A stretch of DNA of 64,000 bases from Chlorokybus atmophyticus (GCA_009103225.1 RHPI01002262.1:412317-476316), one strand, 5' to 3'. Numbered from the stretch's first letter, positions 26,450-55,034 are shown. Notes: a model not told the origin generated them from the letters alone. Numbers and translations: made by a program.

Positions 26450-27336
26450 NNNNNNNNNNNNNNNNNNNNNNNNNNNNNNNNNNNNNNNNNNNNNNNNNNN
26501 NNNNNNNNNNNNNNNNNNNNNNNNNNNNNNNNNNNNNNNNNNNNNNNNNNNNNNNNNNNNNNNNNNNNNNNNNNNNNNNNNNNNNNNNNNNNNNNNNNNN
26601 NNNNNNNNNNNNNNNNNNNNNNNNNNNNNNNNNNNNNNNNNNNNNNNNNNNNNNNNNNNNNNNNNNNNNNNNNNNNNNNNNNNNNNNNNNNNNNNNNNNN
26701 NNNNNNNNNNNNNNNNNNNNNNNNNNNNNNNNNNNNNNNNNNNNNNNNNNNNNNNNNNNNNNNNNNNNNNNNNNNNNNNNNNNNNNNNNNNNNNNNNNNN
26801 NNNNNNNNNNNNNNNNNNNNNNNNNNNNNNNNNNNNNNNNNNNNNNNNNNNNNNNNNNNNNNNNNNNNNNNNNNNNNNNNNNNNNNNNNNNNNNNNNNNN
26901 NNNNNNNNNNNNNNNNNNNNNNNNNNNNNNNNNNNNNNNNNNNNNNNNNNNNNNNNNNNNNNNNNNNNNNNNNNNNNNNNNNNNNNNNNNNNNNNNNNNN
27001 NNNNNNNNNNNNNNNNNNNNNNNNNNNNNNNNNNNNNNNNNNNNNNNNNNNNNNNNNNNNNNNNNNNNNNNNNNNNNNNNNNNNNNNNNNNNNNNNNNNN
27101 NNNNNNNNNNNNNNNNNNNNNNNNNNNNNNNNNNNNNNNNNNNNNNNNNNNNNNNNNNNNNNNNNNNNNNNNNNNNNNNNNNNNNNNNNNNNNNNNNNNN
27201 NNNNNNNNNNNNNNNNNNNNNNNNNNNNNNNNNNNNNNNNNNNNNNNNNNNNNNNNNNNNNNNNNNNNNNNNNNNNNNNNNNNNNNNNNNNNNNNNNNNN
27301 NNNNNNNNNNNNNNNNNNNNNNNNNNNNNNNNNNNC
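26450..27336. other. Assembly gap (887 N) preceded by a poly-G run
   Basis: Run of n characters. Confidence 0.99.
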
Positions 27337-27656
27337 GTTATTTTGTGTCATTACCTTGGGGGGGGGCATGCTTGTAGGCCCTACATGCCAAGCAAATGCA
27401 AAGGGGCGGGTGCAGGGGTTGATGTGAAAACACCGGGAATAAAAAGATACGCGAAAAAATAAAAATTCATGTCAAACGGCCTGAATGCTTATTGACGTTG
27501 GCCGAAATTTGTTGATTCACGTGCTGTATGCATGAAATTCAACAACCAAGCGTGCAGTCTGTCTTATTCCTGCCGAAACGAATATACAACATTCACCCAC
27601 CCGCATACCAAATGTTTATTGCCGTTAGCGCGTGCAGTTAACACATGCACATTCAT

Positions 27657-27711
27657 GGCATAAAGTGCACATTCACGGCATACCATATGCCGTGAATGTG
27701 CACTTTATGCC
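27657..27711. repeat. Perfect hairpin, 26-bp arms, 3-nt loop
   Basis: GGCATAAAGTGCACATTCACGGCATA-CCA-TATGCCGTGAATGTGCACTTTATGCC. Confidence 0.95.
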
Positions 27712-28207
27712 GTAAATGCTTAGATCATTGATAAACAACAGGATGCATGCCACATGATGACCTTGAACGGCCGAAGATGTTTGACGAGTGCCTATGAATA
27801 ATCAAGGGCAACATTGCCGTTAATGCAGATTGCCCGTACCAGGCCAGTTACTGGCCTGAGTAATTGGGCCTGGTCTGGTGGCAAGCCGGGCGCAGCCAGG
27901 CCGGGCGCACCAGGCCAACTGGCCTGGTCGTGTCAACCTGGTGGCGTGTAGGTGTCACGGCAATGTGGCCTTGCCACGCAAAGTAGACCACGTCAGCCTG
28001 CTTGGCCTGCCTGGCCAGACCGCTGCACCAGCGGCTGCTCTGGCGGCGCTTGGCTTGGCCTCTTGCAGGTCTATGCTCGAGCCGACCACTTTGCGGGCGG
28101 AGAGAAAAACTTGTCTCCGTTCACGGCACGAGGCTGAGGGTGAGGGCGTGAGAGGACGAGGGGGGAAGTGGGAGAGCGAGCTCGCTGGAGGCAGGGTGGT
28201 GCTGCGC

Positions 28208-30661: not shown

Positions 30662-32485
30662 TCAACTGGCTGGCGTTGACAACTTTGAGGGCTTGTTGTA
30701 AATTACCACGCTTGCGGCTACAACAAGCAGCGAAGTAATAGCAATGCCCAATGCTGCATGCGCATGGTGAACATTGTCGACTACAATGTAGAAGCCAATA
30801 ACACTGGCAATGAAGGCACAGACGATGGCCAGCACCAGTAGCAGCACTGTGCAAAGAAGTACACCAGCTACGCCACTGTGGTTGCACTTGTAAGCAGCCC
30901 TGTAGGACGTCCTCAGCACAACTCTGAATGCCCACGCTTGCTGGCCAAAAAGCATGAACAGTGAGGCTAAGGAGGCAAAGAGCGCCCCTGCATTGAATAA
31001 CACGAATGTGGCAACCACTCCACCACCTGTTGCTGCTCCATGTGTAGGCAGCTGCGCCTCCCAAGCACCCGGAGGAGACGTAATTACTGTGTATGAGACT
31101 GCAGCGATCAAAGCGGCCACAATGCCACTTACGTTCACAATGGCAGAGTTGGTCTGTTCAGCCCGAGCAAGTTCTTTCTTGGCTCTCACATCCATCAAAG
31201 CATCTTGGACGCTCCCATCCAGCTTCTCAACCAAGTTGAGGCCCTGTGCGACTTTGTATGGTGTTCTCATGTCACTGTCAAGCTGCTCAATGTCCTCCGC
31301 AGAAACAATAGGCAGCAGCAACGTTATCAAGTTCTGCTGCTTAGTTGCTACCACTTTATGCAGCACGTTGGCGTTTCTGTCACCCCACACCTTCTCCAAC
31401 GCCTTGTCCGTTGTCAGCGAGAAAGAGACTTTGAAAATTGACGGAGGGCTCAAGAGCAGGTCCAGAAATCTCATAGCCCTGAGCTTGACCGCTGTCTCAA
31501 CAATGAACGCGATGTCCCCTGTACTCACTTCTGGTTTATCTGCCTTGAGCCGGCACTCCCTTTGGTGCTGAAGGTGTTCAACAACTATTTGCGTAATCAG
31601 TTCCACGTTGTTGTTGTGTCGCCGCCCGCGCTTGACTGAAGTAACAGCCCAGTCGAACATCGCATCATTGAACTCGCCACGATCCAAGCAATTAGACCTG
31701 CAACCTGAGTGTTCATGGCACTGTGCAACGAGGTTCAGCAACTTGCCGACACAATTGATGTGCTTCCGGATGATGTTGGTGTCGGCAGTGGCAGAGGTAG
31801 CAGAAGGGGTGGCTTGCATTGCGCATTGTATAGCTGAGAAGCCACCACTACTACTTATTCCCTCCAAACGCCGCAGGATGTGATTGGGGCTTTTAGCTAG
31901 TTGGAAGGCCCTTGGCAATAGAATTTCCAACACTCGATCATGTCCTCGCTCTGCAGCAAGCCACCAAGGGGCACGGTGATTGGTATCATAGGCGTCTGCA
32001 AGGACGTCTCTTTCTGGCGGAGCAGTAGGTGTAGCAATTCCTTCAGCCTGGAGGAGCTGAAGCAGTTCTTTCACAACTTCTTCCTTTCCAATGTAAGCAG
32101 CATGGTGCAGCGGGGTCCACTTCTTGGTGCCTCCTACGGACCAAAGCAGGGGTCGTCGCAGCTCTTCATCTGCGAGCAGCTCCCGGAGCTGCTGGCAGAT
32201 AGTAGTCTTGGCCTGTTCACTATCAGCTTGACTAGCCTCCTCAAGTGCCCGAAACAGTTGACCAACTTTGGCTTGGAAACACGGAGAGCATACGGAAGCT
32301 GGTACTTTCACATTCTGCGTGAAAAACAGAACAAGCAGCTGTGCTGACTCCTCTGCAGCTCGCTGCTGAATCTCAGCATTACATATCCTGCAATTTGACA
32401 TGGGCAATGTCGCCGGCAAGGGTGTGGTCAAAAGTTTTGCGTCCCCAATTGCAGCTTCTATTGCAGCGGGCGCTGGCGCTGTCAC
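30662..32485 (-). CDS. Ankyrin-repeat plus PGG-domain transmembrane protein (ACD6/ITN1-like architecture); 5' exons may lie upstream (about 33.0-33.5 kb)
   Basis: 607-codon ORF. Ankyrin motifs WTPLHHAAYIGKEEVVKELL, APWWLAAERGHDRVLEILL, NVLHKVV, RTPYKVA. PGG-domain-like VAALIAAVSY...SPPGAW...FVLFNAGALFASL followed by hydrophobic TM helices. The ORF call begins at GTG; the first in-frame ATG is at 32401. Confidence 0.85.
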   Translation of the reverse strand: MTAPAPAAIEAAIGDAKLLTTPLPATLPMSNCRICNAEIQQRAAEESAQLLVLFFTQNVKVPASVCSPCFQAKVGQLFRALEEASQADSEQAKTTICQQLRELLADEELRRPLLWSVGGTKKWTPLHHAAYIGKEEVVKELLQLLQAEGIATPTAPPERDVLADAYDTNHRAPWWLAAERGHDRVLEILLPRAFQLAKSPNHILRRLEGISSSGGFSAIQCAMQATPSATSATADTNIIRKHINCVGKLLNLVAQCHEHSGCRSNCLDRGEFNDAMFDWAVTSVKRGRRHNNNVELITQIVVEHLQHQRECRLKADKPEVSTGDIAFIVETAVKLRAMRFLDLLLSPPSIFKVSFSLTTDKALEKVWGDRNANVLHKVVATKQQNLITLLLPIVSAEDIEQLDSDMRTPYKVAQGLNLVEKLDGSVQDALMDVRAKKELARAEQTNSAIVNVSGIVAALIAAVSYTVITSPPGAWEAQLPTHGAATGGGVVATFVLFNAGALFASLASLFMLFGQQAWAFRVVLRTSYRAAYKCNHSGVAGVLLCTVLLLVLAIVCAFIASVIGFYIVVDNVHHAHAALGIAITSLLVVAASVVIYNKPSKLSTPAS

Positions 32486-33724
32486 GGCTTTGCCTTCGAA
32501 TTGCGCAGCAGTCAGCTACCAACGCAGAGTAGAGTGGACAAGGCGCAGCCTGCCAAGCACATTTGCTGTGTTAACGAAGGGACTGCAAATGAATGGCTGT
32601 TGTCAAGACCGTCGTCTGTTACATTGAATGCTGCTTCTAACTAACTGCTGAAACAGCAGCTAGTGCCAACGCACACAAGCACTGCGTGGCTACACTGCCT
32701 GGGTACACTGCCAATCTCAGAACTATCAAGTACCACGTTGCGGTTGAATATCTCAAACATCAACCAAGTTAGCAAGCAGCTGGTTCGTTCGTCTACCTAC
32801 ACGCAGTTGAGTGCTTCCTCTGCCAGACTGCTGACAGGGCAAGCGCTTAGCGGCAATCAAGGCTTGAGTTTGCTCTGCTTGTGTCAAGTGCTACTCGCTG
32901 AAGTGATCGACCATACAGCATGCAGACACTGTGTCGCTAGCTAGCGTGTGTGTTGCCATTATCACAAGCCAATATGCACATTTTTACCTGGCACTGCGGC
33001 AGCTCCAACTGTTGCGCCCACTCCGTGAAGCAGGCTGCCTCAACTCCTAAGCTCCTCCCTTTGGTGGCTCTGAAGGGCTCTTAACTTGCGGTACCCAAAT
33101 ACGATGTACTGGACAAGCACTCAGCATGTCAGTGCAAGTTTCAACAATGCCAGCAGCAGAATGACAAGCTTGCAATCAGCAGACAATACCAGCAGTCGGT
33201 GGCTTCACCTCAGCTAGACTATCAACTTCAAGCAGCTGTTGCAGCTGTGCTTTGGGGTTCGGCTGTCGCCACAAGCAGCTCAAGCAGCGCAGTGAAAATT
33301 GCACTGAGAAGCGGCGCAGATCAAGGCTCCACTCCCTATCAACGCCATCATGCATGGCCAGGTGAGCTGCAGCATCAATCGGGGGGGGGGTCAGTGGCAA
33401 TGAATGAATGTTTTCTACAGGCACACTTTGCCGCCGGACAAAGCTCGTCTTGGCCGATCGCTTCATCATGTCATGCGACAGGCAACCCCTATACGATCGA
33501 TGCAGTCTTCAACAATGACCGGCAACGCAAGGAACCAATTACACGTTCAGCGTTATTTTGTGTCATTACCTTAGGTGGACTGGCCTAATAATGCTACAGC
33601 CTTGGCAAATTCCTATTGTTACTCGCATCCTAGTCGACACTGCTGACAGGTGCTGATTCAGCATAGCGTAGTAAACGCCGCGCTTACACGTGTCGCTAAG
33701 CCACCGGCTTGTTCAACGAGCGGT

Positions 33725-33845
33725 GCGGCTGATTGGGCGGGGCGGCCGGCATTAGGGCACACGCAAACCTCACCCGGAGGGCATTACATGCGGCACCCGC
33801 GACTGCCGGGCTGCGCGGCCCGCATGCCGCTCATTGGCTAGGCGG
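33725..33845. promoter_or_regulatory. GC-rich promoter-like segment with CCAAT and GC boxes
   Basis: GATTGG-GCGGGGCGG near 33730 and CATTGG near 33833, upstream of ANK-PGG and between the divergent genes. Confidence 0.4.
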
Positions 33846-35029
33846 CGTTTATTAAGTATCAGCCGTTCGATCTGTTAAATGTAGATCTCGACCGTCCAAA
33901 GCACATCCCCACATCATGCAACTGCTCACAATATATGCGAATAAATATCAATAATGAGCACAACGTGCACGATGCCCATGCCGGCATATTGTTGCAAATG
34001 GCCCATGTGATTTGAGATGTAACACACTTATCTAAGGTGGCAAAACAATATCTCTGATGTGTTGCAATATGAAGCACATATGTTGCGGCATGAATACATA
34101 TGGTGCAATTTGGTTAGCAACAAGTGTTTCAAAACTTACTATTCAATGTAACGTTCACGCCAAGGTATGTGCTATAATACTCAGCAAGTAATGCCGAGGT
34201 TACAACCATTAAAATAATGCTAACCTGAATTACCTTGACGTTAAGATTAGACTAAACAAAAAATTGCATCGTTAGGCCACCATTTGGTCACGCATGATAT
34301 TGATCAAATGGGATCGCAACGGTGACAACAGCCGTTGCTGAAAAAGGCAGCGAAATGGCCAATCATTGCAAAGATGCGTAAAAGATGCTGAAAACTATCT
34401 CAGCGGCAACTGCTGACCAACGGCGACTCAACATCGCAAAAGATTCGGTACAATTGCAGCACAGTTAGTGGTTAAATCGGCCGCGTTTTTGGCGGTACGA
34501 GGTCGGGGCAGGCCCCATACCCCAAAGACATGCCGCCACTACTCACCCTCGTTTTAACTAATCCACTCTACCATGTAATGCTAATTGATTACACGCTATA
34601 GTTACTGCGTCATCAAACATGGACAACAGCTGAACTACACTAACCGACTTAACCGTGACAGCCGGGGGGCCGAGGCGGGAGCCCCAAGCGATTATTCAGG
34701 GTGCATTCAGAGCCGCCGATATACATTTGGCTGGTGTGGCTTCATCCTGTGCGTGGGTTTGAAGTGTACATCATTGCGTGTCACCACATGCGACTGTTGA
34801 CTGGTGTTAGATCTTGTGGTTACTACACCGTCGCGGGGTGTTATGCTTTGTTGCTGCAACGCACTATGATGCGTGTATAGCGCGTGTCAGTCTGCTGTTA
34901 ATGTCGCTTCGTGGCTGACACGACGCTGATGTGTGTGGTTGTATGTTGATTTATGGTTTTTGAGCGGTGTCACTTGGGAGCTTGGTATGGGTTGGTGGTG
35001 GTGGTGTGGGCGGCGGCGGCGGCTGTGGT

Positions 35030-35534
35030 GTGAGAGATGGCGGGGGACGGTGTGACGCCTGGTAGTGTAGGGGAGCAGGACGCGGGGGGGGGAGGGGGGG
35101 GAGGGGAGCAGTTCGTAGCTACCCTTGCACGCAGCATGTACGGGGTTGTTGAGGGGTTGTATGCTGCTGGACGGGGCCGATGGGGGCGCTAGAATGGGGG
35201 CTTGCCTCTTGAGGACGCTAGGTACGAGCAGCATGTGATCCGTGCCCTGGGTTGCTGCCTCGACCGTGGCCTGGAGGTGCATGTTAGCATGCACGAAGAT
35301 CGCGCGTGGCGCAGCGGGCCTGGCGCAAACCCTGATGCGCAGTCGCCTATGCTGCCTCTGATTATGTGTGTGGATGTGGGGGGCGCCGGTAATCCTGTGT
35401 TGCGGGTGCTCCTGGAGACCGGCCTTGTTCGCCGCTGGTGGTTGAACATGTTTGTGGGACGTGGCGCCGATCTTGCAGCTGAGACTAGCTGGGCGTCAGT
35501 TGCTTCAGGCATACTCTCCTTTAATCCTTTTTAA
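35030..35534 (+). pseudogene. Possible second, convergent ORF inside the Academ element; unknown product
   Basis: Frame reads QFVATLARSMYGVVEGLYAAGRGRWGR*NGGLPLEDARYEQHVIRALGCCLDRG...LSFNPF with one TAG; no family recognised; 5' boundary approximate. Confidence 0.35.
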
Positions 35535-36191
35535 GGTTTCCCTCGGTCACAGCAAGGTGAGTTCTTGATGTTTAAAGGGTGCGGATGTCTCATTTGCACT
35601 GTTTCCTCGTGCATTGTGTGCGGGCCTGATGGTGTTGTCTTGTCCTGTGTAGGTTCATTCGTGCGCGCGTTTGTTACGAGCCTGTATAGTGCGTCACTCT
35701 GCTGGTACTTGTGCGTGTGACGAACCACTGGAAGTACTGTCGTGTTGATTGTGTGGAATGCAATTGTACTGTTGTGTTCAGATTGGTGGGCACTCGGAGT
35801 GTACAATGTGTTCATGCAACAAGGTTGGCATTGCCTCACACAATGCTGCTTTACCAAGGGTCCAATTGAATGTCATTCGATTGCATGCTATCGTGTCCTA
35901 CGCTGCTGGAGTCAGACTCTGAGTGATCGGAGTCCGAAGGCTGGTTGCTCTCAACATGGTTGGTGGTTTGGGGCAATGGCGTTAACATCTCGTCGTTCCC
36001 TTCCCCATCGCTTGAGTCACTGCTGTTGCTGGTCCATCCTTGTGTGCTATGGTCGCTATTGGGTGTCTGTGTGTACATGGGTGTACCTGTTTGCATGGGT
36101 GTGCCTGTTTGCATCGGTGTTCCTGTATTGAAACTGTGGTTAGCATATTGCATGTAGTCACCACGCTGTGGTGGCATGTACCAACGTGCTT

Positions 36192-39100
36192 TTAGTCACC
36201 TGCTGTGCGCAATGGTGGCTCTCGAACGGGTGCATGTGAGTTGGCATTGAGGTTGTTGCTGCATGACAAACATGTACAACTGCTGGTGCAGCATACCCCT
36301 GCTCTCTTGCATTTGCATTGGTTGTTACCGCACCCATTCTTTTGGCAACCACACCCGTGGAGCAGCAGGCTTCGTTGCTGTCTTGCCATTGCCATGTTTT
36401 CTGGCGTGTCCATCTCTGCCTTGTACATCCCATCTTTCAAAGTGTACTCATACTCCTCAAGATCAGGCATCTGCATGTCGCTGGAGCATGCTTGCATCCA
36501 CATGCCGAACACCCAAACGCTGCGCAGGCAATGAAGGCGCAATGCCTCCACTGTTGGCATGCGGTCGGCTTCCTTCCAGATTGTATGCCAGCAGCCGTTG
36601 TGGATTGCTTCAAGCCATGCACGGATAGCCACGTGAGACTCCTTGTCCGCGCTGATGCCATTGACCTCTACAAAGAGAGCCTGCGCGGATGCAGCTTTCA
36701 AACAGTGGCGGTGCTTGATGAAGTACGCTGTACCCAAGAGCCTGAGGTACATGCCAATATCCTCGCTAATGTCTTCTTGCGTTGTGGAAGTAATGAAGTC
36801 GGTGCATGTCATGAGTGCCTCTTCCCAAAAAAAAACCTTGCTCATGCCTGCAGTGAAAGATGTGTAGTCGGATCCAGTGACTGCAAAGAACTTAAGCAAG
36901 TACTTGGCTCTCAACTGTGGGGGTACGAATCTGAGCTGGGGGAGCAGTTGTATGGAAGAAAGCAAAGTGTTGAGGTGTATAAACAAGGGTCTGCTGGTGG
37001 ATGCGCTGGACGTTGCAAGCTGGATGTGAATTGTCTTTGGCATTAAACTTGTGAGTTGCCAAGCCTCAAGCATTGCAAGGCCGATCATGGTTGTGTCTGT
37101 GTTTGGGCTGTGGATGAGGACGTTAGAGTCAGCGGTGCGCTGGGCGTGCACCCAAACTCTGCTGTCTGCCTCCGCATGGTTGCATGCATATGCATAGGAG
37201 CATGAAAAGACAAGGCCGGCAGCGGTCATCTCCACCACCCTGGCTGTGCCATCGTAAGCCTCAAGATCGCTGCCTCCAGCAATAACCAGTTGCTGTCCAA
37301 TACGGAGGTAAGGTGCCGCCAACTCTGGCAGCCTCTGTGTGTTGATGTCGCACAGCTGATGTTCCGCTGTCTGTTGCCCAGCAATGAGCGTTAGCTGCAT
37401 GGCATGGGTGTAAGAACGCTCAAGTATTCACTCTGACTCGGCTGTGCTGAGTCGGAGTCTCTACGTGCTTAAAGCGACGTCTTAACGCCAGTTGCATGGT
37501 TGGGGTCGTCGAATACGATGTGCATGGATCTCAACGCAGGGTTGAACAGTCTTGACATCACTGCAGCACGAAACATGTGTTCAACGTAATCTCCCAAGTT
37601 GTTGCAAGCTGGACCGGGTAGCATGTTGATTAAGAACATCCCCTCACCAACAACGCACTGCACACCATGGGGGAAGGTACGCAATTGGCATTTTGGACTA
37701 GCGTCTGCAAGCTTGGCCAAGCAAGCGGATTTGTTGCCTTTTCGCATCAACCCGTCCATTTCAAACAGTGCCTGAGGCACTTCCAGATACCGCGCTCTGA
37801 CTGTCACGGTGGGCAGGTCGTTCATTGCGAGTTGCTTCAGCACCAGAGTCTGCGCGCCAGATATCAGTCTTGAGTTGCAGCTGCTTTGCACATGTCAAGT
37901 TGTGTCTCTAACTCACCTGACTTCTCACAATTGCTGTGAGAGCGCGGGCAGCCTTGCCGTGCGCCTTTGGTTTGACCATTGTCTTCAGGTTGTGGCGCCG
38001 ATTAATCCTAGCTGCTGGCACACCCCTCTCAAAACGCTGGTTGCGGTTTAGCTCAAGTGAGTCACGCCCCACGTTGTAGTGGCGAGCTAGATCAGACGCT
38101 TCAGTGTCCGCTGCGACCTGATCACTCTCACCAAGTGCTTGTGTTGCCCAGGTAGTTCTTCCTAAAATGTTTTGGCAGTTCTAAGTACACCCATCATGGC
38201 AGCAACAGTCTTTTGTGTCTTGGCAGAGTCACTGACAGATTGGGCCCTCAATGGCTACATGCGTCTGCGCAGGTGTTGAGGCCTCAATTGCAACCGGAAT
38301 TGCTTCCAGCCCTCAACTCTGTAAGTACAATGTACTGTTTTCTCACGCATGCCATCAGCAGTCGGCCTAGACAGCGTCGTCTTGAGGTCTTTGTTGATGA
38401 GGGTCTCATGGGCCTCATTAACTGCAACATTGCTGCCGGGGGTGCCCTTCATTGAAACCGTGAAAGCCCCACCTTGAAGTGCCTCCATGACTGAAGGGGG
38501 GTACCCAAATGTGTCTGCTATGTGCCCAACCACCAAACGCTGATAGTGCGGGCGGTCCCACGCGAAGTACAGCGGGGCAAGCACCTTGTATGCTGCGAGC
38601 CTCAGGCCCCATTGTGCTGTGCGCATGGCTATGAAGAGGCCTAAGTAAGCGAGGCAGTCTCGCTGAGTGAAGGACCACCAGAAACTCCAGGTGAGATCCC
38701 TGGTTGCACGTAAGTCTCCATAGTCTTTGAATGCTGCGTAGTGCTCTGCAGCCATCACTTCGTCTACTTTGCCCTCTGATACACAAATCTCGCCACGCAG
38801 GCCGATACGCGCAGCCTCTGCGCTTTCCTGAAAGGTCAGTATCTGCTTGCGGGTGATGGCTTCAAGCAACTGTAGCAGCAGCGTGTGTGCTCTCTTCCAG
38901 TTATGCCCCTCAACTAGCTGGTTGCGTGCACTGGCAGATAATAACCCCGCAGCAAGCGCCATGGGCTCTATGCCCGCATCAAAGGAGTACTTGAACAGCA
39001 CGGGTAGTGTGTTTAGGCATGCATGCCAGTCTCTCACAAAAGGAACAACCCATTCCCAAAACACGGGGTCCTGCAGCTTCAGCATGTTCATGAGCGCCCA

Positions 39101-42100
39101 GGTCTTCTGATCACCTTCAACAAGCAAGTAAGTACTCCCATGTTGAACTTGCAGCTTTGATGCCAGCTCCATCTACGCAAGGCGCAGGTTATCAGGGCGA
39201 TCTGGGTTGTACGGGAGGAGGGGCAAGTATACAACATGACTCTGAACTGTGTCACTCATGCCACCATATTGATCCTACTATGGTCTTCTTCAGACTGCAG
39301 TTGTGTTGCTCTGGGCATACCATATGAGCCAGCATTGCTGCATGTGCGTGGTGCCTGAAATCAAGCCATGCCTTTTCTTCCGTAGTGTCATGGTGGGTGA
39401 CCTGAGAAGGCTGTGGGCGAGGTGGTCTGCGCACAGCACCAATCATGGGCGCGCGCAGTGCTGGCACAGATGGAGCGTGGAGCCCCCCCTCAGTGAGCGT
39501 GCGCCACCTAACATGTTGCGTGCCAATTTGTTGTGTCATTTCACACGAGCAGCATAACGCCGCGTCTATGGCCATCAATTACACGTGGCCCACCTGTACA
39601 TCTTGAGGGTATGCCGGAAGCTGGATGTTGCATATTGGTTGAGGAACAACCACTTATGTGGTGGTGCAATGCAGATCAGCCTCTCCTCGCCCATTGAACC
39701 GAAGAGAATGCTGTGTCTTAAAATCCCAATTATCAATTGACGCGGATACAATACAAAATTGCCACCATCGAGGTCAACTGGTGCTGGGTTGTTGATGACG
39801 ATGTCAGCACGCGCGAAGATGTGCCAGCACATCACATGAGGTTGATTTACATCATAGCACACACGCTTGCCACAGCACATGTGCCCATGTACCTGTTGAG
39901 TGTTGCCTTGCTGACACATACCGCCAGCTGATTCATCGCCTCATGCAGGACTCTTGAACTGCTCAGTGCATCAATGGCATCTGCCAGCGCCAGGTGCACT
40001 GAGGAGTAGGCCTTGCAGTTTCTAATGTACAAAGCTGTGGCGAATAGGTAAGATGTCTGCACTTTCAAGGCGTGCAGTCTTGGATTGGTAGACAAGCCAG
40101 AGGTGTCTTCACCACATGTTAGCAGTTTGTGCTGCATCACTCTCAACCCTAAGATCGCAGCGAACAGTTTATGCAGCTCCTCACCACTGGGTTGCAACAC
40201 ATCCACTTCGCAGATCAGGTACGAATGCAGACCCTAATTTAGCCCGCATGCGCGACTCCGTCATCAGCTTCTGCACGTGCTTCAGCACAGAGTTACTGAT
40301 GACAATAGGTGATGATGTTGATGATGCTGATTGGCTTCCTTCACTCACATGTATTGGAGTTTGCACTCTCCGCAAAAGACAGTTTCAGGGATCTGACCAC
40401 CCTCCCAATAGCAGAGTACCCAGTCGCGGGCTGGAGGTATGTGTGTGCAGCAAGGGTCCAAACACTTGCTTGCACATGTCCATTAGCTGCCTTTTGTTGA
40501 CACAAAAAGCAACAGCTACTTCGCCTAAGGAAAACAAGCATCGATAGGGAGCAGCTTACTAGCAATATGTTTCATGGCAGCATCCAAGGCGCTATCACCA
40601 GTCACATGCGATGCGCACAGCTTCCACTCGTGCAGCTGTTTTGGAGTTCTCTGCGTGCGACCAGGTGTGCCAAAGGTGGACTGTAATTGTCTCGTATGGC
40701 TAGATGTCCCGGGCATCCGAGGAGCACGCTGCGGGCCAGCTCTTAGCTCTGCAACTAGCAGCTCGTACTTAGCACCATCAGCCATGGCGTCAGCCAAACT
40801 GTTACAGGCTGTGGCACGATCACGTTCAACCTCTTCCATGTCCTTCCGCAGCTGCTGTTCATTGGCTTCATACAAATCCAAGTCCTCCATGGCCGCAGCC
40901 AGACTGCGCTATACCTCCGCACTTACACTGCGTGCAGCTCGCAGCTTCCCATCCAGCCTTGTATACTTAGCATCAAAGTCTTGTGAATACAAGATTAGCA
41001 ATTGGTTTCAAGTGCATGCACGCTGGCTGCGTGCACGCTGGCTGCATGCACTCATTTGCCCGCCCCACCTTTAGTGTTGCTTGAGAGTGCCTGTGCCTTG
41101 CCTCCCAAGTCTGCTTTGCCGCCTCATTCGACTGCAGCAACTCGTTGTATTGTTGTCTAGCAATGCGCTCCCTCTATACAGCAGTTGCTTGGGCAGCCTC
41201 AATGTCCAACGCACGCTGCTTCATCTCGACCAATGCTAACTCCAACTCCTTCACATTGCACAGTCAAGCCACTATCAGACACTGAACCCAGCAGGCCACT
41301 CTCTCTGTGTACAATAATAGCTTACCGCGCACACAGCGTGCAATGCTTGATTCTCAGTCCGCAGCAGCTCTGCCTCATCACTCAATGCATCAGAATCATC
41401 ATAGCAGGCACCCCAACACACTTATTCTAAGCTTTCAGACACATAAAGAGATGCGCCCTCAGATTCATAGCACATAGTGTAGACAACACAACACTGCACT
41501 CATCATCGCACACCTCCAACGCAGCTTCCTCAAACTGCCTCATTACACGGTTGTGAACTGGCTGTCTTGGCTGCTGCACATCACTTCCACGGTCTTCATC
41601 TACACATGCAACTCAAGCACTCAGCACGCTGTACAATATACACAATGCAGCGTGCCAATGTATCAAAGAGCAGTGTATTACAATCCACATAATAATACAC
41701 AATGTGCCCTTGTCATTTCTTACGTCCGAACCTCTTAATATAAGACAGTACACCTGCTGTTACGGTTGGACTATGAGCAGAGAACTGACTGGCTGCCGTG
41801 ATACGTGGCCCTACCACAGGGCCAGTTCTGTGAGACAAATTGATTTGTGACCAATCGAGACTGCTGGTGCTCGGCACTGCCTGCTGCACAGTCTCTGGAC
41901 GTGCTCCTATCACGGAATTGGCTCGCGGAACGGGCACAAAGCCCCCTTGCGCAGATGAAGCATGCTTGCATACGAGGACATCGCACACAAATACGATGAG
42001 TAACCAACACACATGCACATACCTCGCGGGTCCGCATGTACACCGTTTCAGGGATTGCTGTGTGCACAGATGCATGCTCAGCATCAGCTCGATCAGCTAG

Positions 42101-42700
42101 CGAGGGCCCAGCATCGTCGCCGAGATCATCATGCTCAGAGGATGGCTCGCTGCTGGCTGCGGCACGAGGATCATCAGCATTAATACCATCCTCCAGCTCG
42201 GCGGATGTTAGCACAGGCAGAGCTGCTCGCGGAGGTTTCCCTGCATCACCAAACTCCCCCGGATCACATCGTGCCACGCGGTTACAAACCCCAATCACAC
42301 ACAAAGCAATACAAATTAACACACAGGCTATATGACACAGCCACACCTCTATCCAGGTGAGCGTGTCATCTGAATACCTCTCCCACTTGCAACCATGCAT
42401 CAAGGCATGAAGCTGCACAAGATATAAAGACATCGTGTCATGCAGCTTGCAATCCCTCCTTACCGAACTCCACATCTTCTCCATGCGCTTACGATTAGTT
42501 TGCACCGACTTGAGCTGGGAGGCAGCATGAGCCTTGCGCTTGGCCTCTTCTTCGACAGTGGCCGGTGCTTTGCGCTTGGACTTCTTCTACTGCGGAGGGG
42601 CGGGCGTCTGCTCAAGCTGGTCAGACGACGGCCAGATGTCGCGCAGCGCCTGGCTACATGCCTGCCTACCTATCTCAACACGCATCACTTACAACATCAG
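36192..42700 (-). pseudogene. Academ transposase-XPG nuclease-Cys8 gene, multi-exon, with a few nonsense mutations
   Basis: SIDNWDF...HCTT (about 39730), YLPLLP...VEGDQKT...PFVRDWH..LN, FIAMRTAQW...YFAWDRPHYQR...GAFTV...NEAHETLINK, DGLMRKGNKS, GEGM...HIVFDD, NHAEADSRVWVHA, SPNTDT, GSDYTSF..GMSK, and C-terminal CGCQKNGCGNNQCKCKRAGVCCTSSCTCLSC. In-frame stops at 39654-39656 and 39173-39175. 5' boundary approximate. Confidence 0.82.
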
Positions 42701-43727
42701 CGCCGCCCAGCTGGACGTTAGCTACCCCGCCGCCAGACATGGCGGCACAATTCAAACAACGCCAGGCCTACTGATGCAAAGACGAGATACAACAACCGTC
42801 ACTGTTGATTGTAGTCGCAGTGGGTCGAGACACCACGCTACAACGCAGATCACCTATGACACGCGTTGGCAAAACCGCTGTCTCAGAGCACGCAACGACG
42901 ACAACGCAACATCACCTAACAACTACACGCGTTACATCTCGCCAGCCAGCACACGCGCAAGCACATCTAGACCGCCCACAGGTCCCCCACATCCGACGGA
43001 CCTCCCTAATGCAAAGCAAACCCCCCGCCTCGGCCCCCCGGCTGGTGACGAGATCGGACACTCTGTGCTAAACGCAGCGGCCAACGCGTCAGACCACGAC
43101 CGTTTGAACCTGAGTCAGCCACTCGGACCGCGTTAGGGCTAGATAAGCGATGCCCGGCTGCGAGCATTGACTGATGACTGCAGCGTGCATGCGTTTGCCC
43201 AAAGCCCGGTTCAGGGCCGAAACGACACAAGGGTCCAGGACGACCAAGAAAAAAATGCAGGTGCCACCTGCTTGCCTATCAGGCGGTGCCCTTGCTCAGC
43301 AAACTGTCAGCAGCAGGCTGACTCCAGGTTGGTGGGATTGGGTTTTGCTGACAGATGCCTTCTTTTGGCTGCCTAATCTTGCCAAGCAGCAGCAAAGTTG
43401 CACGTTTTTCTCAGCGCCAAATGCCGCTCACCCATGCATGCGGTCTTCGGACCGTCCTCATGGCTGCCTGCCTGACATGCAGTATCTTTAGAGATGAGGC
43501 TGTAGGTCCTGGCTCAAGTCATGATTCGTCAGCAGCGTTGCTGTTGACATTGCTAATGTCAACTCTCCAAGAGATGCGTAAGTGTGCGTAAGCCACAACC
43601 ACACGTACTATACATACCGTATGTTGGTCTCTGCTTCAGCCAGTGCGCTCTGGTCTCGTCTGTTGTGTTGGACTAGTTTGAGACAGCAGCAGCCCAGCCC
43701 AGCCAGAGACTCATCCAACAGCCAGCC

Positions 43728-44827
43728 ATGGCCAAGCTTGTCCTCTTGCTCGCCTTCCTCCTTGCCACAAGCGCCACCCTTAGTGGTGTCGTCCATGCGT
43801 CGGATCCCGACCCCACCTACGACCTCTTCGACCCCAACGCCCCCGTGGCCGCCACCTTCAATGGACTCCCTGCAGGCCCACACCTTGTAGGCCCTGGCGG
43901 GATGATCCAGCGCCTGGATGCCTCCACCTTCCCCGCACTCACGTACGTGTTGGTTTGCGTCTTCACTATTGCATCTTTCCTTGCCTGGATCATGACGCGC
44001 ATGTGGTACTTCACTTCTCTCATGCATGCTATCACGACGATGCATATGCACTATTTGACGTGATGGAGGCTGCTGTGTTTGACAACGCTGGCTCTGGTGC
44101 TGAGTTGATGCTTGTGTGAAGTACTCACTGCTGCGTTGGTTGACTGCAGGGGTCAGGGGCAGAGTCTCGCCCTCCTGACATTCAAGCCATGCAGTCAGAG
44201 TCCACCACACACGCACCCGCGTGCGTCCGAGTTGGTGTACGTCATCAGCGGTCAGATCACCGTCATGCTCATCGATACCTCTCGTAAGTTACTGCCCAAT
44301 TGCAAGCCAGGCAGACAGTTGGATGTTCCCAACTGTGCGCACACGTCACGTCAACCGTACATACGGTATGTGATGGTTAACAATTGCATGTATGTATGTG
44401 CAGTAAGGATGAGAACCAGCACGCTTCGCGCTGGAGATGTGGCGTTGAACCCACGTGGGATGCTTCACGTCCTGACCAACTTTGATTGCGAGGAGGGTGC
44501 GGTCGTTCTCGAAGCCTTCAACAGCCAGAACCCGGGCGTACTGGTCAGCAACATGCATACAACCAACCGTTTTTTGTGTTGTGTATGCCTGTGAGTGCGG
44601 TTGTAACACATCAAACTCTGCCCACGCAGCTTGCCACAGACTCTCTCTTCAGCACTCCATTTGACACCTTGTCGATCACGACGGGTCTGCCCATACGCAA
44701 GCTCGACAAGATCCAAACGTTGTTGAACAACACACTGCCTGGGGCCTTCCCTGCCGGTGACCCCGGAGTCTGCCACCGCGCCCAACACAACTACCCGCTC
44801 ACCTTCCCGAACGGTTATCAGGCTTAG
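43728..44827 (+). CDS. Germin-like/spherulin-like cupin, copy A (exons 43728-43942, 44150-44283, 44404-44543, 44630-44827; 228 aa)
   Basis: Signal peptide MAKLVLLLAFLLATSATLSGVVHA; germin box 1 PPHTHPRASELVYVISG; box 2 GDVALNPRGMLHVLTN; FNSQNPG; all introns GT-AG and phase-consistent. Confidence 0.93.
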
Positions 44828-47018
44828 ATTGGCATGGATGGGGGCAGTGCTGTGATGATCCCATGCCAATGCCTGGGCTCAGCAGCGGTGCAAAGGGTTT
44901 TGTTAATGGCCTCTCTAGTCAGATACACTGTCCATATTATTGGAATGCCTATACAACGTTTCTACATGTCACGGACCCCTTGTGTATTACATGTGCCATG
45001 AGATGGATAAAACGGGGAAATCTGCTGGCCTTTCTTCGCTGCTAGTTTGTTGGCTACTTGTTCCTGCAGTACAAACATCGTTACAGAACAGTTGTATCCC
45101 TTCTTGAATGCCTGCTTCACGTGATTCAGATCGCAATCGCAGTGTGTGCTGCGTGTGAACTCATGCATGCATGGCTCAATGAGCGCTTGTGGCTTACTAT
45201 TATTACAGACCCATGTATATGAGAGCATGCCATGCAGTGCGCTCATGAGCATATTCTTCTTACCATAACAGTTGAGAGTGACTTAGGCAGCTGGGTTGAT
45301 GCAACTGTGCAAGTCAGCACTACTCCACAGCAAAACTGGAACTTCTCTGTACTCAGGCCCTGAAAAGATGGATGTGGCTGCCACGCAACAGTCTTATGCT
45401 AACTATGACACAAACTTAGCAAGACAAGCAAAAGTCACACAGAGTAACACCGCAACTTTTGTGCAAAGCCTTTTGTGAAACAGATTCACAAATTTTCTGC
45501 TCGGTCTGCAAACTGTTGTATGCTAACAACACCGCCACATACAACCATGTCAATCGATGCACTTGCAATCAGCTTCTGTCACCTCATCAAGGCAGAAGTG
45601 CTGCCAGCACGAAGGGCACAGATGCAACAGTTATCCTCAGCAGTTCGCTTCCAGAAATCTTCGGATTAGGGCTGGTCATCCTCTATCAGTTTAGGCAGCC
45701 TCCTGCCATTGTATGACAATGGTCAACATCCTTTGCAGCAACCACAGCCCAAAGTCATGACATGTACGTACACTCTCACTCTTGCGCACACATGCATTCA
45801 CACACTTGCCACAGTCTCCTCGGACATCGCGCCACGGCAGCAGATTACCGTGTGCACATTCTCACCGTCAAACATCCCCGAGGGTGCCGAAAGCCACGTA
45901 CAGCATGGTCACAGTCACCAGGCTAAGATCTGCAGTGCACATGACACCAACATGTTGTTGTAAGCAGTCATATGTGTGCACTCACCTTTCACGTATTGCC
46001 AGATATGACACAGGCAGTGAGACAGATTGAATGATTACTCCAATTTGGTGGCCATTTGCCACTACAAACTACAAGCAGAAGTGCAGCTGCACGTCTACAG
46101 AAATGTTACCTCATAAGCATGGACACAAGCAATCATCAACATCACGTCTGTCAACGCCTTATGAGAAAAAGCATTCCAGGTTGTCACCTTAAGAGCTGAA
46201 CAGAACCTAACCTGCAGGAATGTCCAACGACAGCGTGGGGCACAATATTGCTTTTCCTCACGCTGCAAACGCAGCAAACCCTTGAGGGAAACCACCACAG
46301 CACGAGAATGCGGTACCTGTCGATTGACACGCTGCAAGAGCACATGGCAACTCGAGACATGAGCACGAACACTATGGCCAGCAGGGAGACCTAGCGCTAC
46401 GCGGGCCAACCTGACAAGAGACAACACGCTGTTCCTTTGCACAGTCACGCAAAAGCCCAACATGCAAAAACGGTCAGACTGATCGCCCTGTCCAGAATGC
46501 TGCTGCTTCTTGAATGCCACCGGCAGCACCAGCATGCCCGTGCCGAGCATACCCAGGTGAAGTACTGAACTATTTGTCCTTGCCCACATGGCCGTGATGA
46601 CTACTCCTTTGCATGTGTTGCCCTCTGCTCAACCCTTCCTTCCCGGTTGAGTAACCGAGCTGCGCCAATGCTTGCTGCTGTTTGCAGTATATGCTGGCAA
46701 TGAGAGTTGTTCACTAGACAACAACTGCCATGCTGTGCGTGCAGTTGTCACAAGTACTTCAGCACACAAAGCACTTCAGAATCAACATTAGCAAGTTGCT
46801 GTACTTCAAGCTGGAGACTGAGTGAGTGCTCACGTAGAGTCCTGTCATGTGGCATAGCGTAAGATGTTGCACGGCAATGCAATCTGTGTCAAGCAAACAG
46901 GACGCAAACTACAGTGCGAACGACTGTGAGTAGCAACACAAGTGGAGGATTGCGACCGAATCAGTGCGTCTCCACAACTGGACAAGGTTTGTGCCATCTC
47001 ACACCTACTGCATTGTGA

Positions 47019-47052
47019 TGTCAACCAGTTGCAAGCATGCAACTGGTTGACA
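47019..47052. repeat. Perfect hairpin, 15-bp arms, 4-nt loop
   Basis: TGTCAACCAGTTGCA-AGCA-TGCAACTGGTTGACA. Confidence 0.95.
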
Positions 47053-47759
47053 CCGGCATTCACATTGATTGGTTCACAGGCGGTGCTCTGTTTGCAACAA
47101 AACTTTGCTCACCAAACTATTCTATGTGCCGTTGTGCTGCACATACACAGTCAAGTAAACAACGTCACACTGCTCTTCCTCGTCATGGTGATGATGATGA
47201 CGACGGTGATCATGACCATCATTATCACAACCATCAACATCAGATTAGATGAACACTCTCACCTGTCACTTCCAGCCCGTCGCCGCCGCCCCCTGAGAGA
47301 AGAATGCTCCAAAGTAGCAGCCGGCCTACGTCGCTGTGGTGCCGTTGCTGGCGAAGTCGTCGGCCAGGTCGGCAGGATGGCTGGCTGTGTGGCTCTGCGG
47401 CGGTGGCCGTGAAGCTAGGGTAAGCTGCAAAGCTGAATGCTGCTGTTACTAACAGCATCCTGTTAGACAGGCCACAACAAGCACGTTTGCGCGGTCTGCG
47501 CTGATGGCACAGATGAGGACTTGTGCATTGGGTCGGCTAACAACGGGGGCGGCGGGCGGGGGCGGGGGCGGGGGCTCTGTGCTTCTCAAGAGGGAGCATT
47601 GACATTGCTTGGTACACAATTACTACGTTGTTTTTAAAGACAATGGCGTGCATACGCCACCACCACCACTGGGTTTACATCTGGAGCATGCATGAAGTAA
47701 TTGTGTGGCTCGTGCAGTATAGACACTGAGTACACACCCTTGTCGCTGTTGCTAACAGC

Positions 47760-50700
47760 ACAGCAGAAGTAGTAGCCTACTACTACCACTGCTACAGCAG
47801 CCACACAGCCAGCCACCCTGCCAGCCCTTGCCGACCTCGCCAGCAACAACATTACAGAGACATAGGCCAGCAGCTTCTTGGAGCATTTTTCTATCAGGAG
47901 GCGGCGGGGGCGGGGGCGTTGGCTGCGGCGACTGGCTAGAGTGGGATGCTGGTCGTGGTGTCCGCATGCTGCTGCATGAGGCGGTGGTGACGATGGGCGG
48001 CGCTGCTAGGGTTGAAGATGACGAGGAGGAGGAGGACGAGGCGGGAGTGCCGGGCAGAAGTGACAGGTGAGAGAGGTTGGGTCTGGTGCTGGTCTGATGC
48101 TAGTGTTGGTGATGATGGACAGTACCACCGTCATCGTCATCACCAAGACGAGGAAGAGGAGTGCAATGTTAGCTGGTTTGATTGTACATGTGCAGCCCAA
48201 CAGCACACAGCGAAGCTTTTTTGCGAACAGAGCATTGCCTATTCACCACTCATTGTATTTGACTGCCCGTGTGTTTTGTGGATCACAGCTAAGGTGGACT
48301 CACATTGTTATAGCGGGAGACTGCCCAACAAAGCTTGTCCGATTGTGCAAGCGCGTTGATGGCCTGAGGTTGCATTTCTTCACTTCAATTGCTAATTGCT
48401 ATCGCAGCGAAAAACGCCTCAAGCAGTCAGGACTCTACCTGAAGGAGTCTATCTCCAGCTTAAAGCTCAGCAATTTGCGGTTGATGTTGATTTCCAAGTG
48501 CTTTGTGCCAACTCCGGTGACCACTGTACGCACAGCACTTGCAGTTGTTGTCTAGTAAGCACAACTCTAATTGCCAGCATAACTTTGCGCACAAAAGTTG
48601 TAGTGCTGATCTTCGTTGACACATTTGCTTGTCACAAAGACTCACATTGTAAGGAGGTGACAAACTTGATGGGTGCTGCAATGCCTGTATGGCCTTTGTT
48701 TTACCACCGTTCTTGCGCATGAATTCGTCGTGGAGTCGGATGTTGCATCAGCACTTGACAATGAACGGACTCACTTCAGCCGTAAGTAGCATGGGGTTCG
48801 TGAACACCACTGCGGCATGCGTGTGGGAGATTGCTGCGTTTGTAGTCGATACAACTTGGATTGCACATTGTATATAACTGCAGCATCAAAGTGAGCTTTG
48901 GGGTATACCAACTGTTGCTGGAACTGGTGTTACTAGCACAGTATACTAGCGTGGCAGCAGCATTCATTGTTGTAGGGCCTGTATACAGGGAAGTTTCAGT
49001 TTTGCTGTGAAGTAGTGCGAACTTGCACAGTTGCATCAACCCAGCTGCCTGAGTCACTCTCAACTGTTAGGGCCAAAAGTACTTGCTCACGAGCACATGC
49101 GCTCGTGTACACGGGTCTGTAGTTATACAAGCGATTATTAAGCCATACCTGCATGCGTTTACATTTGGCATACACTGCCGTCATTGACGCTGCTGCTCGT
49201 GCTTGTACAGGTGATTCCAGTTTGCTGCATGCATGCTTGCATGACTAACGGGGTGGTGGTGTAGTTGTTGGCCTAGATGTAGTAGTGTAGCCCGGTGGTT
49301 GAATGTATGTGAGAGTGTGCGCCTGCTGGTTGCTGTCTGCATGATGACATATGCATGACACGATGCATGAGCAAGCACGCCCCGCATTGTTTGTACATAC
49401 ACATTGTGGTTGCAACCCGAATCACGCAACGCAGGCATTGAAGATGGGACACAAAATGTTCTGTTTACATACATTGTTACAACAATATATGCACCGCAGG
49501 AACAAGTATCCAACAAACTAGTAGCTAGCGAGCAAAGGTTAGCAGCAAGCTAGCACAGGCCACACAGATTGCTCCGGTCTATCCACCTTATGGCATGTAC
49601 ATCACACAAAGGCTCCGTGTGACTTGTAGAAACGTTGTGTCTCTGATCAAAGAGGCCAACAACAAAACCCTATGCAGCGCTACTGAGCCCAGCCGTTGGC
49701 ATGGAAGCATCACAGCACTGTCCCACATCCAATGCCAATCTAACCTTGATAACCATTTGGGAAGGTGAGCGGGTAGTTGCGTTGGGCACGGTAGCAGTTG
49801 CCAAGGTCACCGGCACGGAAGCTGCCCACAGGCAACTTGCCGGTGCTGTTCAACATCGCTTGGATCTTCTCGAGCTTGCGTATGGGCAGACCCGTCGTGA
49901 TCGATAAGACGTCAAACGGAGTGCTGAAGAGAGAGTCTGAGGCGAGCTGTGTGGGCACAGTTTGGTATGTGTTAAATTCAAGCACACACAGGCATACACA
50001 ACACAGAAAGGTTGGTGGAATGTATGTTGCTAACTGACCAGTGTGCCAGGGTTCTGGCTGTTGAAGGTTGCAAGAACCAGCGCATCCTCCTCGCAGTTGA
50101 AGTTGGTCTCCATATGAAGCAGCCCGCGCGGGTTTATCGCCACATCTCCAGCGCGAAGCGTACTGGTCCTCAATGTCACTGCACAAACATGCAGTTGTTA
50201 ATCACCAACCACGTGTGTGCACCCACGCGCGCACAATTGGGAACGCGTTCAACTGTGCCTGGCTGGGCAGTGACTTACGGGAGGTGTCGATGAGCATGAC
50301 GGTGATCTGACCGCTGATGACATACAGCATCTCGGACGCACGAGGATGTGTGTGCGGCGAATTCTGACTGCATGCCTTGAATGTCAGGAGGCCGAGACTC
50401 TGCCCCTGGCCACTGCAATCAATCAACGCAGCAGTGAGTGCTTCACACAAGCATCGATTATCAGCACCAGGCCAGGGTCTGACACAGCATCCAACCATAA
50501 CGCCCGAACAGTGCATCATCATGATGGCATGCATGAGAGATGAAAGCGAAGTAACTGTATCATATCCAGTGACAGAAGAAGCTGCAGAACAAGCATCCAA
50601 GCCAGCGCGTACGTGAGTGCGGGGAAGTTGAGAGCATTCAGGCGCTGGACCATCCCGCCAGGGCTCACAGGGCCAGGGCTTGCAGGGAGGCCATTGAAGG

Positions 50701-51624
50701 TGGCGGCCACGGAGGCGTTGGGGTCGAAGAGGTCGTAGGTCGGGTCGGGATCCGCCGCATGGACGACACCACTCAGGGTGGCGCTAGTGGCAAGGAGGAA
50801 GGCGAGCAGCAGGACAAGCTTGGCCATGGCTGGCTGCTGGCTGAGTCTCTGGCTGGGCTGGGCTGCTGTTGTCTCAAACTAACCCAACACTACAGAAGAG
50901 ACCAAGCAAGAGCACACTGGCTGAAGCAGAGACCGACACAGAGTATAAATAGTACGCGTGGTTGTGCCTTACGCAGACATGGAGAGGTGACATCAGTAAT
51001 GTCAACAGTGCTCGTTGATGACGAAAGACTATGTGAGCAAGCGAAACTACGCAGCATTACCTTCTTGGTGTACTGCATGTCAGTCAGGCAGCCATAAGGT
51101 ATTGGAAAATCGTGTGGCCACTTGTGGCTGCCCAATGTTAGGCTGCCTGCCTGCCTGACTTAGGCAGCCATTGCTCTGTCAGCAAAACTCAATCGTATCA
51201 ACCTGGAGCAAGCCTGCTGCTGAGTATGTGCTGAGCAAGGGCACAACCTGACAGGAAAGCAGGTGGCACGTGCAGTTCTCTGCTGGCGTCAAGCCTGGGA
51301 CCCTTAGTCACTTGGCCCTGAAACCGGGCATTAGCAGCGACGCGCGTCATAAGTAGCGGCCAAAGCTCGCAGCCGGGCATCGCCGCAAGTGCTTGCCCAG
51401 CCATGATACTTTTCAAACGCATCGCACTGCTGACTAAGGTTTATCGGTCGCGGAAGCACGCGTTGACCGGTATGTGCGGCACAGCGTGACTGGTTTCATC
51501 ATACCAACGTGGGTCACTGCAGCTCAATAAGCCGGTCACGACGGTGTAAGCGCGGCGCTTACCACGCTTTGCTTGTTAAGCACTTATTTTATCACCTGTC
51601 AGCAGAGTCGACTCGGGTGCGCCG
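47760..51624 (-). repeat. Right inner arm of the inverted duplication
   Basis: Mirror of 43049-47450; 51540-51624 additionally matches 33620-33710 upstream of ANK-PGG. Confidence 0.88.
49740..50827 (-). CDS. Germin-like/spherulin-like cupin, copy B (exons 50827-50613, 50412-50279, 50178-50039, 49946-49740; 231 aa)
   Basis: Same intron positions and first three exon lengths (215/134/140) as copy A; SPHTHPRASEMLYVISG and GDVAINPRGLLHMETN intact. Confidence 0.93.
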
Positions 51625-51631
51625 TAGGGTA

Positions 51632-54600: not shown

Positions 54601-55034
54601 AACTTGCAGCATTTACAGCAGCCACAATGGCCACCCCCACCACCATTTTAAGCGTAATAATACTTCTAAAAAGTGTGGCACACTAACTTCTGCACCCCCG
54701 CGCCAAAGTGCATGAAACTCTGTAAATAAGGTCTCCTAACCAATAGGAACCCAACAAAAAAACAATCACTCAGTTTCGATTTGCAAAAGTTACAACTGCA
54801 CAAGTACAGGAGAGGCTGACCCTCATTTGAATCCGCAAAAAAGCAAAATTTGAAATTCCATAACTGGCGCCATACTTGGCCGTTTGGGCACGTGTTTGGT
54901 TCGCTGCATAGGTCTATAGGACCCTAATCTACCCTCAAGATATGGCCGGGAAAGACCCATTGGTCCGCCAATTACAGGCCAAAAACGGCTTATCCCCATC
55001 TTAGGGTCGGTTCCCAACTCAGGACAATTTACCC
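51632..55034 (-). mobile_element. pogo-like DNA transposon P2, inner, 3403 bp
   Basis: Imperfect TIRs GGGTAAACTGCCTAAAGTTGGG and GGGTAAATTGTCCTGAGTTGGG; TA TSDs at 51630-51631 and 55035-55036. Confidence 0.85.
52203..54367 (-). pseudogene. P2 transposase (psq HTH, CENP-B HTH, DDE_1, long charged C-terminal tail); one frameshift near 53130
   Basis: GAPTLFTEEEE..L..W, GYKWCKLF, ISADEVG, REHITMMCAV..AG...PPLVI.KG, NAWMTTEIF, LLVVDGHVSR, then a 1-nt shift to ILPPHTTHRLQVLDVSCFHPFK. Confidence 0.9.

Follow-up and report, generated by a model that had tools for sequence, protein, structure and literature searches.

An ankyrin-PGG gene and a germin-like gene of Chlorokybus as probable chance neighbours within an old inverted duplication

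Are two divergently arranged genes that seem to appear twice in one stretch of an algal genome a functional unit, or has a duplication made chance neighbours resemble one? The question is raised by a window of 64,000 nucleotides from Chlorokybus atmophyticus (GCA_009103225.1, RHPI01002262.1:412317-476316; all positions are counted from its first letter), in which a gene on the minus strand, encoding an ankyrin-repeat protein with a PGG domain (ANK-PGG), stands head to head with a gene on the plus strand encoding a germin-like protein (GLP). In land plants, the ACD6-type/ANK-TM and germin families have roles in defence and in reactive oxygen species (ROS) biology. A sequence-only reading of the window had proposed a co-regulated sensor-plus-ROS-effector module, copied as a block and repeatedly hit by transposons in its shared promoter. 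We favour a plainer reading, to which we assign a probability of about 0.75: the two genes would be unrelated, separately promoted and neighbours by chance, within an old inverted duplication in a transposon-rich part of scaffold 22. Both genes are already catalogued members of known families, and the architecture of the locus is ordinary.

Geometry and decay of the inverted duplication

Both genes are intact and represented by public JGI models (Chlat1; Table 1), which assign the window to scaffold 22 of the sequenced Chlorokybus strain, CCAC 0220. Once the transposon between the two genes is removed they are divergent, as the sequence-only reading had it. Their start codons are 10,967 bp apart today and 2,577 bp apart in the transposon-free spacer. 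The latter value replaces an earlier estimate of ~2 kb, because the public model of ANK-PGG starts at 32760 and not at the ATG at 33469 from which that estimate was made. A candidate coding exon at 33176-33469 was rejected, as it gave only a sub-threshold Pfam match and is not part of the public model.

The pair lies in an inverted segmental duplication, in which ~30681-47406 is mirrored by 60211-47786 around a palindrome centre near 47.6 kb, with a central spacer of 379 nt (47407-47785). The arms, referred to here as left and right, are ~75% identical, with a synonymous divergence (dS) of 0.30. In a self-comparison, 43147-45147 matches 51383-49399 in inverted orientation at 75%, and further inverted matches extend inward to 47406/47786. 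On the outer side, sensitive blastn recovers a colinear inverted chain (32634-33468 vs. 59950-59003) that runs from ANK-PGG intron 1 through the upstream region and continues past the right-arm transposon block (33624-33689 vs. 51621-51544, 73% identity over 78 nt, E = 6e-8). The match between 51540-51624 and 33620-33710, from which a repeat of the whole arrangement in the right arm had been read, is real and forms one link of this chain, but the ANK-PGG counterpart on the right is a remnant rather than a gene. That the pair was duplicated as a block is borne out by the same alignments: the colinear chain and the separate transposons of the two arms together argue for one inverted block copy, each spacer of which was invaded afterwards.

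The limits of the copied block do not coincide with those of the genes. No homology between the arms was found beyond 30681/60211, and this edge falls ~17 nt short of the stop codon of ANK-PGG, in the last ~6 codons of the gene. The outer breakpoint thus cuts the 3' end of ANK-PGG, and the copied unit was therefore not defined by the gene pair.

The two genes also differ in what became of their right-arm copies. The ANK-PGG remnant consists of ~90 C-terminal codons with 47% amino acid identity to residues 534-621 of the left-arm protein (P0001 in Table 1), interrupted by an in-frame stop at 60007-60009. Its alignment to the left arm jumps from intron 1 (32634-32673 vs. 59950-59910) to residue 534 (59944), so that ~1.6-1.9 kb has been lost, and with it the ankyrin region as well as half of the PGG domain. 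The remnant is still detected by a PGG profile (E = 1.8e-6), has a ratio of nonsynonymous to synonymous divergence (dN/dS) of 0.66, and diverges in its tail after 60213, where between-arm homology stops. Because that homology does not continue beyond the edge of the block, the right copy probably never had the native 3' end or stop codon. As for the germin-like gene, the left and right copies (GLP-L and GLP-R) are both intact, have three identical intron positions and share 82% of their amino acids. Computed exon by exon and then pooled over the four exons, their divergence amounts to a dS of 0.30 and a dN of 0.10 (dN/dS = 0.34). Both GLP copies have therefore been retained and are under purifying selection.

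Transposons have repeatedly entered the space between the genes, as had been proposed, and the insertions in the two arms are independent. The left spacer holds a putative Academ-type DNA transposon, bounded on both sides by a target-site duplication of 4 bp, GTGA (34655-34658 and 43045-43048), and carrying one open reading frame (ORF) that matches DUF6589 in Pfam, and the right spacer holds nested elements of the pogo type. Counted from the ATG, each GLP has 0.6-0.8 kb of private upstream DNA before a transposon is reached. A further segment of ~1 kb in the left spacer (33690-34658), partly AT-rich, lacks both a right-arm counterpart and terminal repeats; either a left-arm insertion or a right-arm deletion could explain it. 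Across the GLP upstream regions (43147-43727 vs. 51383-50828; 581 vs. 556 nt) the arms are 75.1% identical, compared with 67.5-81.7% in introns, 79.4% in the 3' flank and 80-90% in exons. Since the upstream identity is no higher than that of the introns, no shared regulatory block stands out.

The history of the locus can be read from these data. (i) Ancestral segment: ANK-PGG faced outward and the germin-like gene inward, with a spacer of ~1.7-2.6 kb between them. (ii) Duplication: a single inverted copy of this segment arose, at dS ~0.30, the outer breakpoint falling in the last ANK-PGG codons. (iii) Differential loss: both germin-like copies stayed intact under purifying selection, whereas the right ANK-PGG suffered a large deletion, acquired a stop codon and decayed. 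(iv) Invasion: DNA transposons entered each spacer later and independently. Mirror arms, a uniform nucleotide divergence of ~25%, retention of GLP with pseudogenization of ANK-PGG, and later transposons are all features of inverted segmental duplications with differential gene loss. Compared with such duplications, nothing here is unusual; the arms are of considerable age, and indels have rearranged them heavily.

Table 1. Coordinates of the genes, spacers, transposons and remnants in the two arms of the duplication (TIR, terminal inverted repeat).
Feature	Position	Strand	Remarks
ANK-PGG = Chlat1/3224 = Chrsp22S08808 (P0001, 626 aa)	30662-32760	minus	public model, already catalogued
ANK-PGG exon 1, 9 codons	32760-32734	minus	public model as sole support
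ANK-PGG intron 1, 218 nt	32516-32733	minus	GT-AG
ANK-PGG exon 2, residues 10-626	32515-30662	minus	stop TGA 30662-30664
ANK-side spacer	32761-34658		
Left-spacer DNA transposon, putative Academ-type	34659-43044		perfect 21-nt TIRs (34659-34679, 43024-43044)
GLP-L upstream region	43049-43727	plus	
GLP-L = Chlat1/3225 = Chrsp22S03504 (P0002, 228 aa)	43728-44827	plus	public model, already catalogued
GLP-L exons	43728-43942, 44150-44283, 44404-44543, 44630-44827	plus	all introns GT-AG
Inner palindrome	44828-49739		
GLP-R = Chlat1/3227 = Chrsp22S03506 (P0004, 231 aa)	50827-49740	minus	intact; public model
Right-spacer transposons, two pogo/Tc5-type	~51621-58470		ORFs with DDE_1, HTH_Tnp_Tc5
Right-spacer TIR pairs	51630-51653/55013-55036; 55035-55052/58448-58465		
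Right-arm counterpart of ANK-PGG upstream region and intron 1	59003-59950	plus	patches of 70-86% identity
ANK-PGG pseudogene remnant	59944-60267	plus	last two predicted membrane helices only

Several further observations concern the arms and their surroundings. In the palindrome centre (45.1-49.4 kb), the ORFs neither match Pfam families nor are conserved at the protein level from one arm to the other, and no position was found for Chlat1/3226. A 164-nt stretch just past the GLP-R stop codon (49556-49719) recurs with 100% identity at 59235-59398, where a G-run stands before it and a lone N (59399) directly after it; this second copy looks like a gap-fill or an assembly join, not biology. Within the central spacer of the palindrome, 47461-47538 gives a 78-nt direct match of 84.6% identity to 22101-22177, a segment that falls within a long WD40-containing ORF (21764-23668). 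The minus strand between 16000 and 24000 carries a run of long ORFs that match Rav1p_C (E = 1.4e-41) as well as WD40, pointing to a RAVE/DMXL-like gene. Elsewhere in the window there is a Ty3-type gag ORF on the minus strand (262-1308), and an assembly gap of 886 N (26450-27335) with a 69-nt near-perfect palindrome just after it (27650-27718).

The ankyrin-PGG and germin-like proteins

The left-arm ANK-PGG gene contains a 607-codon ORF on the minus strand (30662-32485) that is 100% identical to Chlat1/3224 and passes the Pfam cut-offs for both Ank_2 (34.4 bits; cut-off 27.3) and PGG (28.6 bits; cut-off 24.1). In the full-length protein P0001, ankyrin matches are confined to a short repeat block at residues 131-211 (Ank_2, 34.3 bits, cut-off 27.3; Ank, 31.4 bits, cut-off 21.1), and residues 469-580 match the PGG domain (PF13962; 28.4 bits vs. 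a cut-off of 24.1, E = 1.5e-6). Kyte-Doolittle hydropathy gives four hydrophobic peaks at residues 468-486, 513-531, 561-579 and 596-614. The motif that follows the first helix reads P-G-A, at residue 491, instead of P-G-G. Among the nearest neighbours of P0001 by language model (Atlas), 29 of 30 fall in PGG clusters. A single-sequence AlphaFold model was unusable, with a predicted local distance difference test (pLDDT) score of 41.7.

Like the ANK-TM/ACD6-type proteins of land plants (PF12796 + PF13962), ANK-PGG has N-terminal ankyrin repeats, then a PGG domain with four predicted hydrophobic helices and a P-G-G-like motif past the first of them. Unlike them, it is very divergent: one to three repeats are detectable, and these are followed by ~230 residues of helical sequence without a domain match. 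Its N-terminus is also distinguished by a CxxC...CxxC arrangement. In this region (32515-32300, residues 51-88) the two motifs are CRIC (residue 51) and CSPC (residue 85); they could be a zinc-binding pair, a feature that is not known from ACD6-type proteins. ANK-PGG is thus best described as a divergent ankyrin-plus-PGG membrane protein, with a putatively cytosolic ankyrin region and four predicted membrane helices, and by analogy with what has been proposed for ACD6, a channel-like role is conceivable.

The germin-like protein belongs to a small Chlorokybus family. With the cupin ORF at 44112-44594 as a query, Chlat1/3225, 3227, 123 and 1166 are returned, and the proteins of GLP-L and GLP-R match Cupin_1 in Pfam with E = 1.7e-22 (P0002) and E = 1.2e-23 (P0004), respectively. 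GLP-L aligns to barley oxalate oxidase with E = 2.8e-18. By inspection and hydropathy, its residues 4-22 form a hydrophobic, signal-like segment, followed by a small-residue motif before Asp-Pro-Asp-Pro. In an alignment of eight sequences, the Mn ligands H92, H94, E99 and H138 are invariant and correspond to barley H88, H90, E95 and H137. GLP-L therefore shares with barley oxalate oxidase (PDB 1FI2, 2ET1, 2ET7) a monocupin architecture of ~220 aa, a signal-like N-terminus, a mature part that opens with Asp-Pro-Asp-Pro, the germin boxes and the His-His-Glu-His set.

Other features set the Chlorokybus proteins apart from the GLPs of land plants. The N-terminal cysteine pair and the segment between the two cysteines are absent from all four Chlorokybus sequences in the alignment, about 20 residues of land-plant GLPs being missing, and in the tree these four form a clade of their own (support 100/100), within which the left and right copies are sisters (80/74). 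All four (P0002-P0005) have in common a C-terminal extension of ~25 residues with one cysteine and the end motif Y-P-x-T-F-P-N-G-Y, a tail that land-plant GLPs lack. The positions of barley Asn75 and Asn85, active-site residues that the barley oxalate oxidase needs according to its mutant structures of 2006, are occupied by Ala and Ser in P0002.

From these features, the Chlorokybus GLPs are predicted to be secreted, Mn-binding monocupins. Oxalate oxidase activity of GLP-L is doubtful. Because the metal site is kept while both asparagines are replaced, the better guess is some other redox enzyme, for example one resembling superoxide dismutase (SOD).

Recurrence of the adjacency

If the two genes belonged together, their adjacency might be expected elsewhere, and a synteny search had been suggested as a check. 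At every other locus examined, comprising those of five distant relatives of ANK-PGG and 80 metagenomic GLP loci, the ANK-PGG/cupin adjacency was absent.

Relatives of ANK-PGG are themselves scarce. Word searches with P0001, using either the whole ORF or the PGG region, returned only the protein itself. An exhaustive phmmer search gave 120 hits, nearly all of which are generic ankyrin matches; five representatives (P0040, P0045, P0050, P0093 and P0145) match the PGG region, and all are ANK+PGG or PGG proteins by Pfam. These five come from Logan, ENA or JGI/IMG sets, none from eukprot (Chlat1). The best PGG-region match to P0001 has 31% identity (E = 1.7e-12), and the searched collection holds no close relative. 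The two best of these relatives, P0040 and P0045 (loci L086 and L087), are from the same Logan run, SRR32661575, which could be a source of further ANK-PGG relatives. In the public Chlorokybus proteome, no further ANK-PGG paralogue was detected. Since the Chlat1 proteome is part of the searched collection, no annotated ANK-PGG relative stands beside the other two GLP paralogues.

The neighbourhoods were surveyed from both sides. No cupin was found near the five ANK-PGG relatives; the sequence covered extends up to ±10 kb around three and consists of contigs of 3-6 kb for the other two. Conversely, neither PGG nor ankyrin sequences were found in the 80 metagenomic GLP loci (559 kb in total, 36 loci of at least 7 kb) by tblastn and by a PGG profile hidden Markov model (HMM) built from six proteins. 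In the literature, we found no paper linking germin-like and ACD6-type genes by position. The Chlorokybus genome paper, which describes strain CCAC 0220 as C. atmophyticus (PMC7027972), contains no mention of cupin, germin or ankyrin; the strain has since been renamed C. melkonianii (PMC8611356).

Competing readings of the locus

The best-surviving alternative is that ANK-PGG and GLP-L of the left arm form a co-regulated divergent stress unit, in which a membrane sensor or channel and an apoplastic H2O2-producing enzyme would be controlled via shared spacer elements. We consider this unlikely. The two genes do resemble divergent co-regulated pairs with a bidirectional promoter in that they stand head to head and were copied together; by chance, however, one in four adjacent gene pairs is head to head, and the edge of the duplication truncated ANK-PGG rather than respecting the pair. 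Bidirectional promoters usually span less than 1 kb between start sites, whereas the spacer here measures 2.6 kb from ATG to ATG (11 kb today, with the transposon) and shows no excess of conservation over the introns. The defence and ROS roles of both families in land plants lend the idea some appeal, as do the transposon landings in the two spacers, since these would suit open chromatin. Against this, one of the two duplicates lost its ANK-PGG partner while its GLP stayed constrained, and the adjacency was seen at no other locus examined. The proposed sensor-plus-ROS-effector module thus finds no positive evidence, and differential loss, a breakpoint within a gene, a long unconstrained spacer and the lack of recurrence weigh against it. 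Nothing in the sequence indicates a functional link between ANK-PGG and GLP-L. Were the unit real, the streptophyte lineage that branched earliest would already have coupled an ankyrin membrane protein resembling ACD6 to an apoplastic Mn-cupin, placing a plant-immunity-style pairing of sensor and ROS at the streptophyte base; the evidence points the other way.

A narrower version, to which we give still less credence, would have the left pair act as a stress-inducible divergent unit in Chlorokybus, with GLP-R having escaped this control after the truncation of its partner.

Some points nevertheless weigh against chance neighbourhood. The sequence evidence counts against co-regulation of the left pair but does not refute it. 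Each of the homologous spacers was hit independently by transposons, at sites a few hundred bases from one another, a pattern compatible with open chromatin of a promoter-like kind. The survey of other loci also has limits: the five relatives of ANK-PGG are remote (E from 1e-12 to 6e-4), and most of the metagenomic GLP contigs are short and probably derive from land plants, mosses or fungi, so that both are weak proxies for orthologous loci. Similarly, the absence of a partner at the remaining GLP loci of Chlorokybus (Chrsp1S03224 and Chrsp112S01630) rests on the public proteome, in which unannotated or decayed copies would be missed. Because the surveyed loci are only distantly homologous, the survey lowers the probability of a module without disposing of it.

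Could the mirror arrangement instead be an assembly artefact, i.e., two haplotypes, or two paralogous regions, falsely joined in inverted orientation? The lone N at 59399, coming after 164 nt of perfect identity to the GLP-R flank, and the 886-N gap described above are the kind of signs that such a join might leave. The arms, however, differ by ~25%, with many indels and different transposons, which marks them as old paralogues and not as collapsed or duplicated reads; GLP-L and GLP-R are distinct public gene models, and the suspect join touches only ~165 nt of the right spacer. An artefact is accordingly a very improbable source of the mirror symmetry.

Least credible of all is a live right-arm remnant, whose 78-codon ORF (60031-60267) would encode a small membrane protein modulating full-length ANK-PGG: the ORF is open, comprises two PGG-derived helices matched by the PGG HMM and has a dN/dS below 1, and small proteins are reported to modulate ACD6 in Arabidopsis (bioRxiv 10.1101/2021.01.25.428077), but a value of 0.66 over 80 codons is expected from one constrained and one neutral lineage, the ORF opens with GTG, neither an annotated model nor an evident promoter accompanies it, and the homology upstream of it is fragmented, with the possible assembly join at 59399.

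Chance neighbourhood within an old inverted duplication therefore remains the favoured reading, and what the locus offers lies in its parts and in its history. Chlorokybus has a very divergent yet recognizable ANK-PGG protein, from which it follows that the ankyrin-PGG architecture is older than land plants. It also has a private, four-member clade of GLPs without the oxalate-oxidase asparagines and without the N-terminal disulfide. The locus as a whole would be an example of how inverted duplication, differential loss and transposons can make a chance neighbourhood resemble a repeated design.

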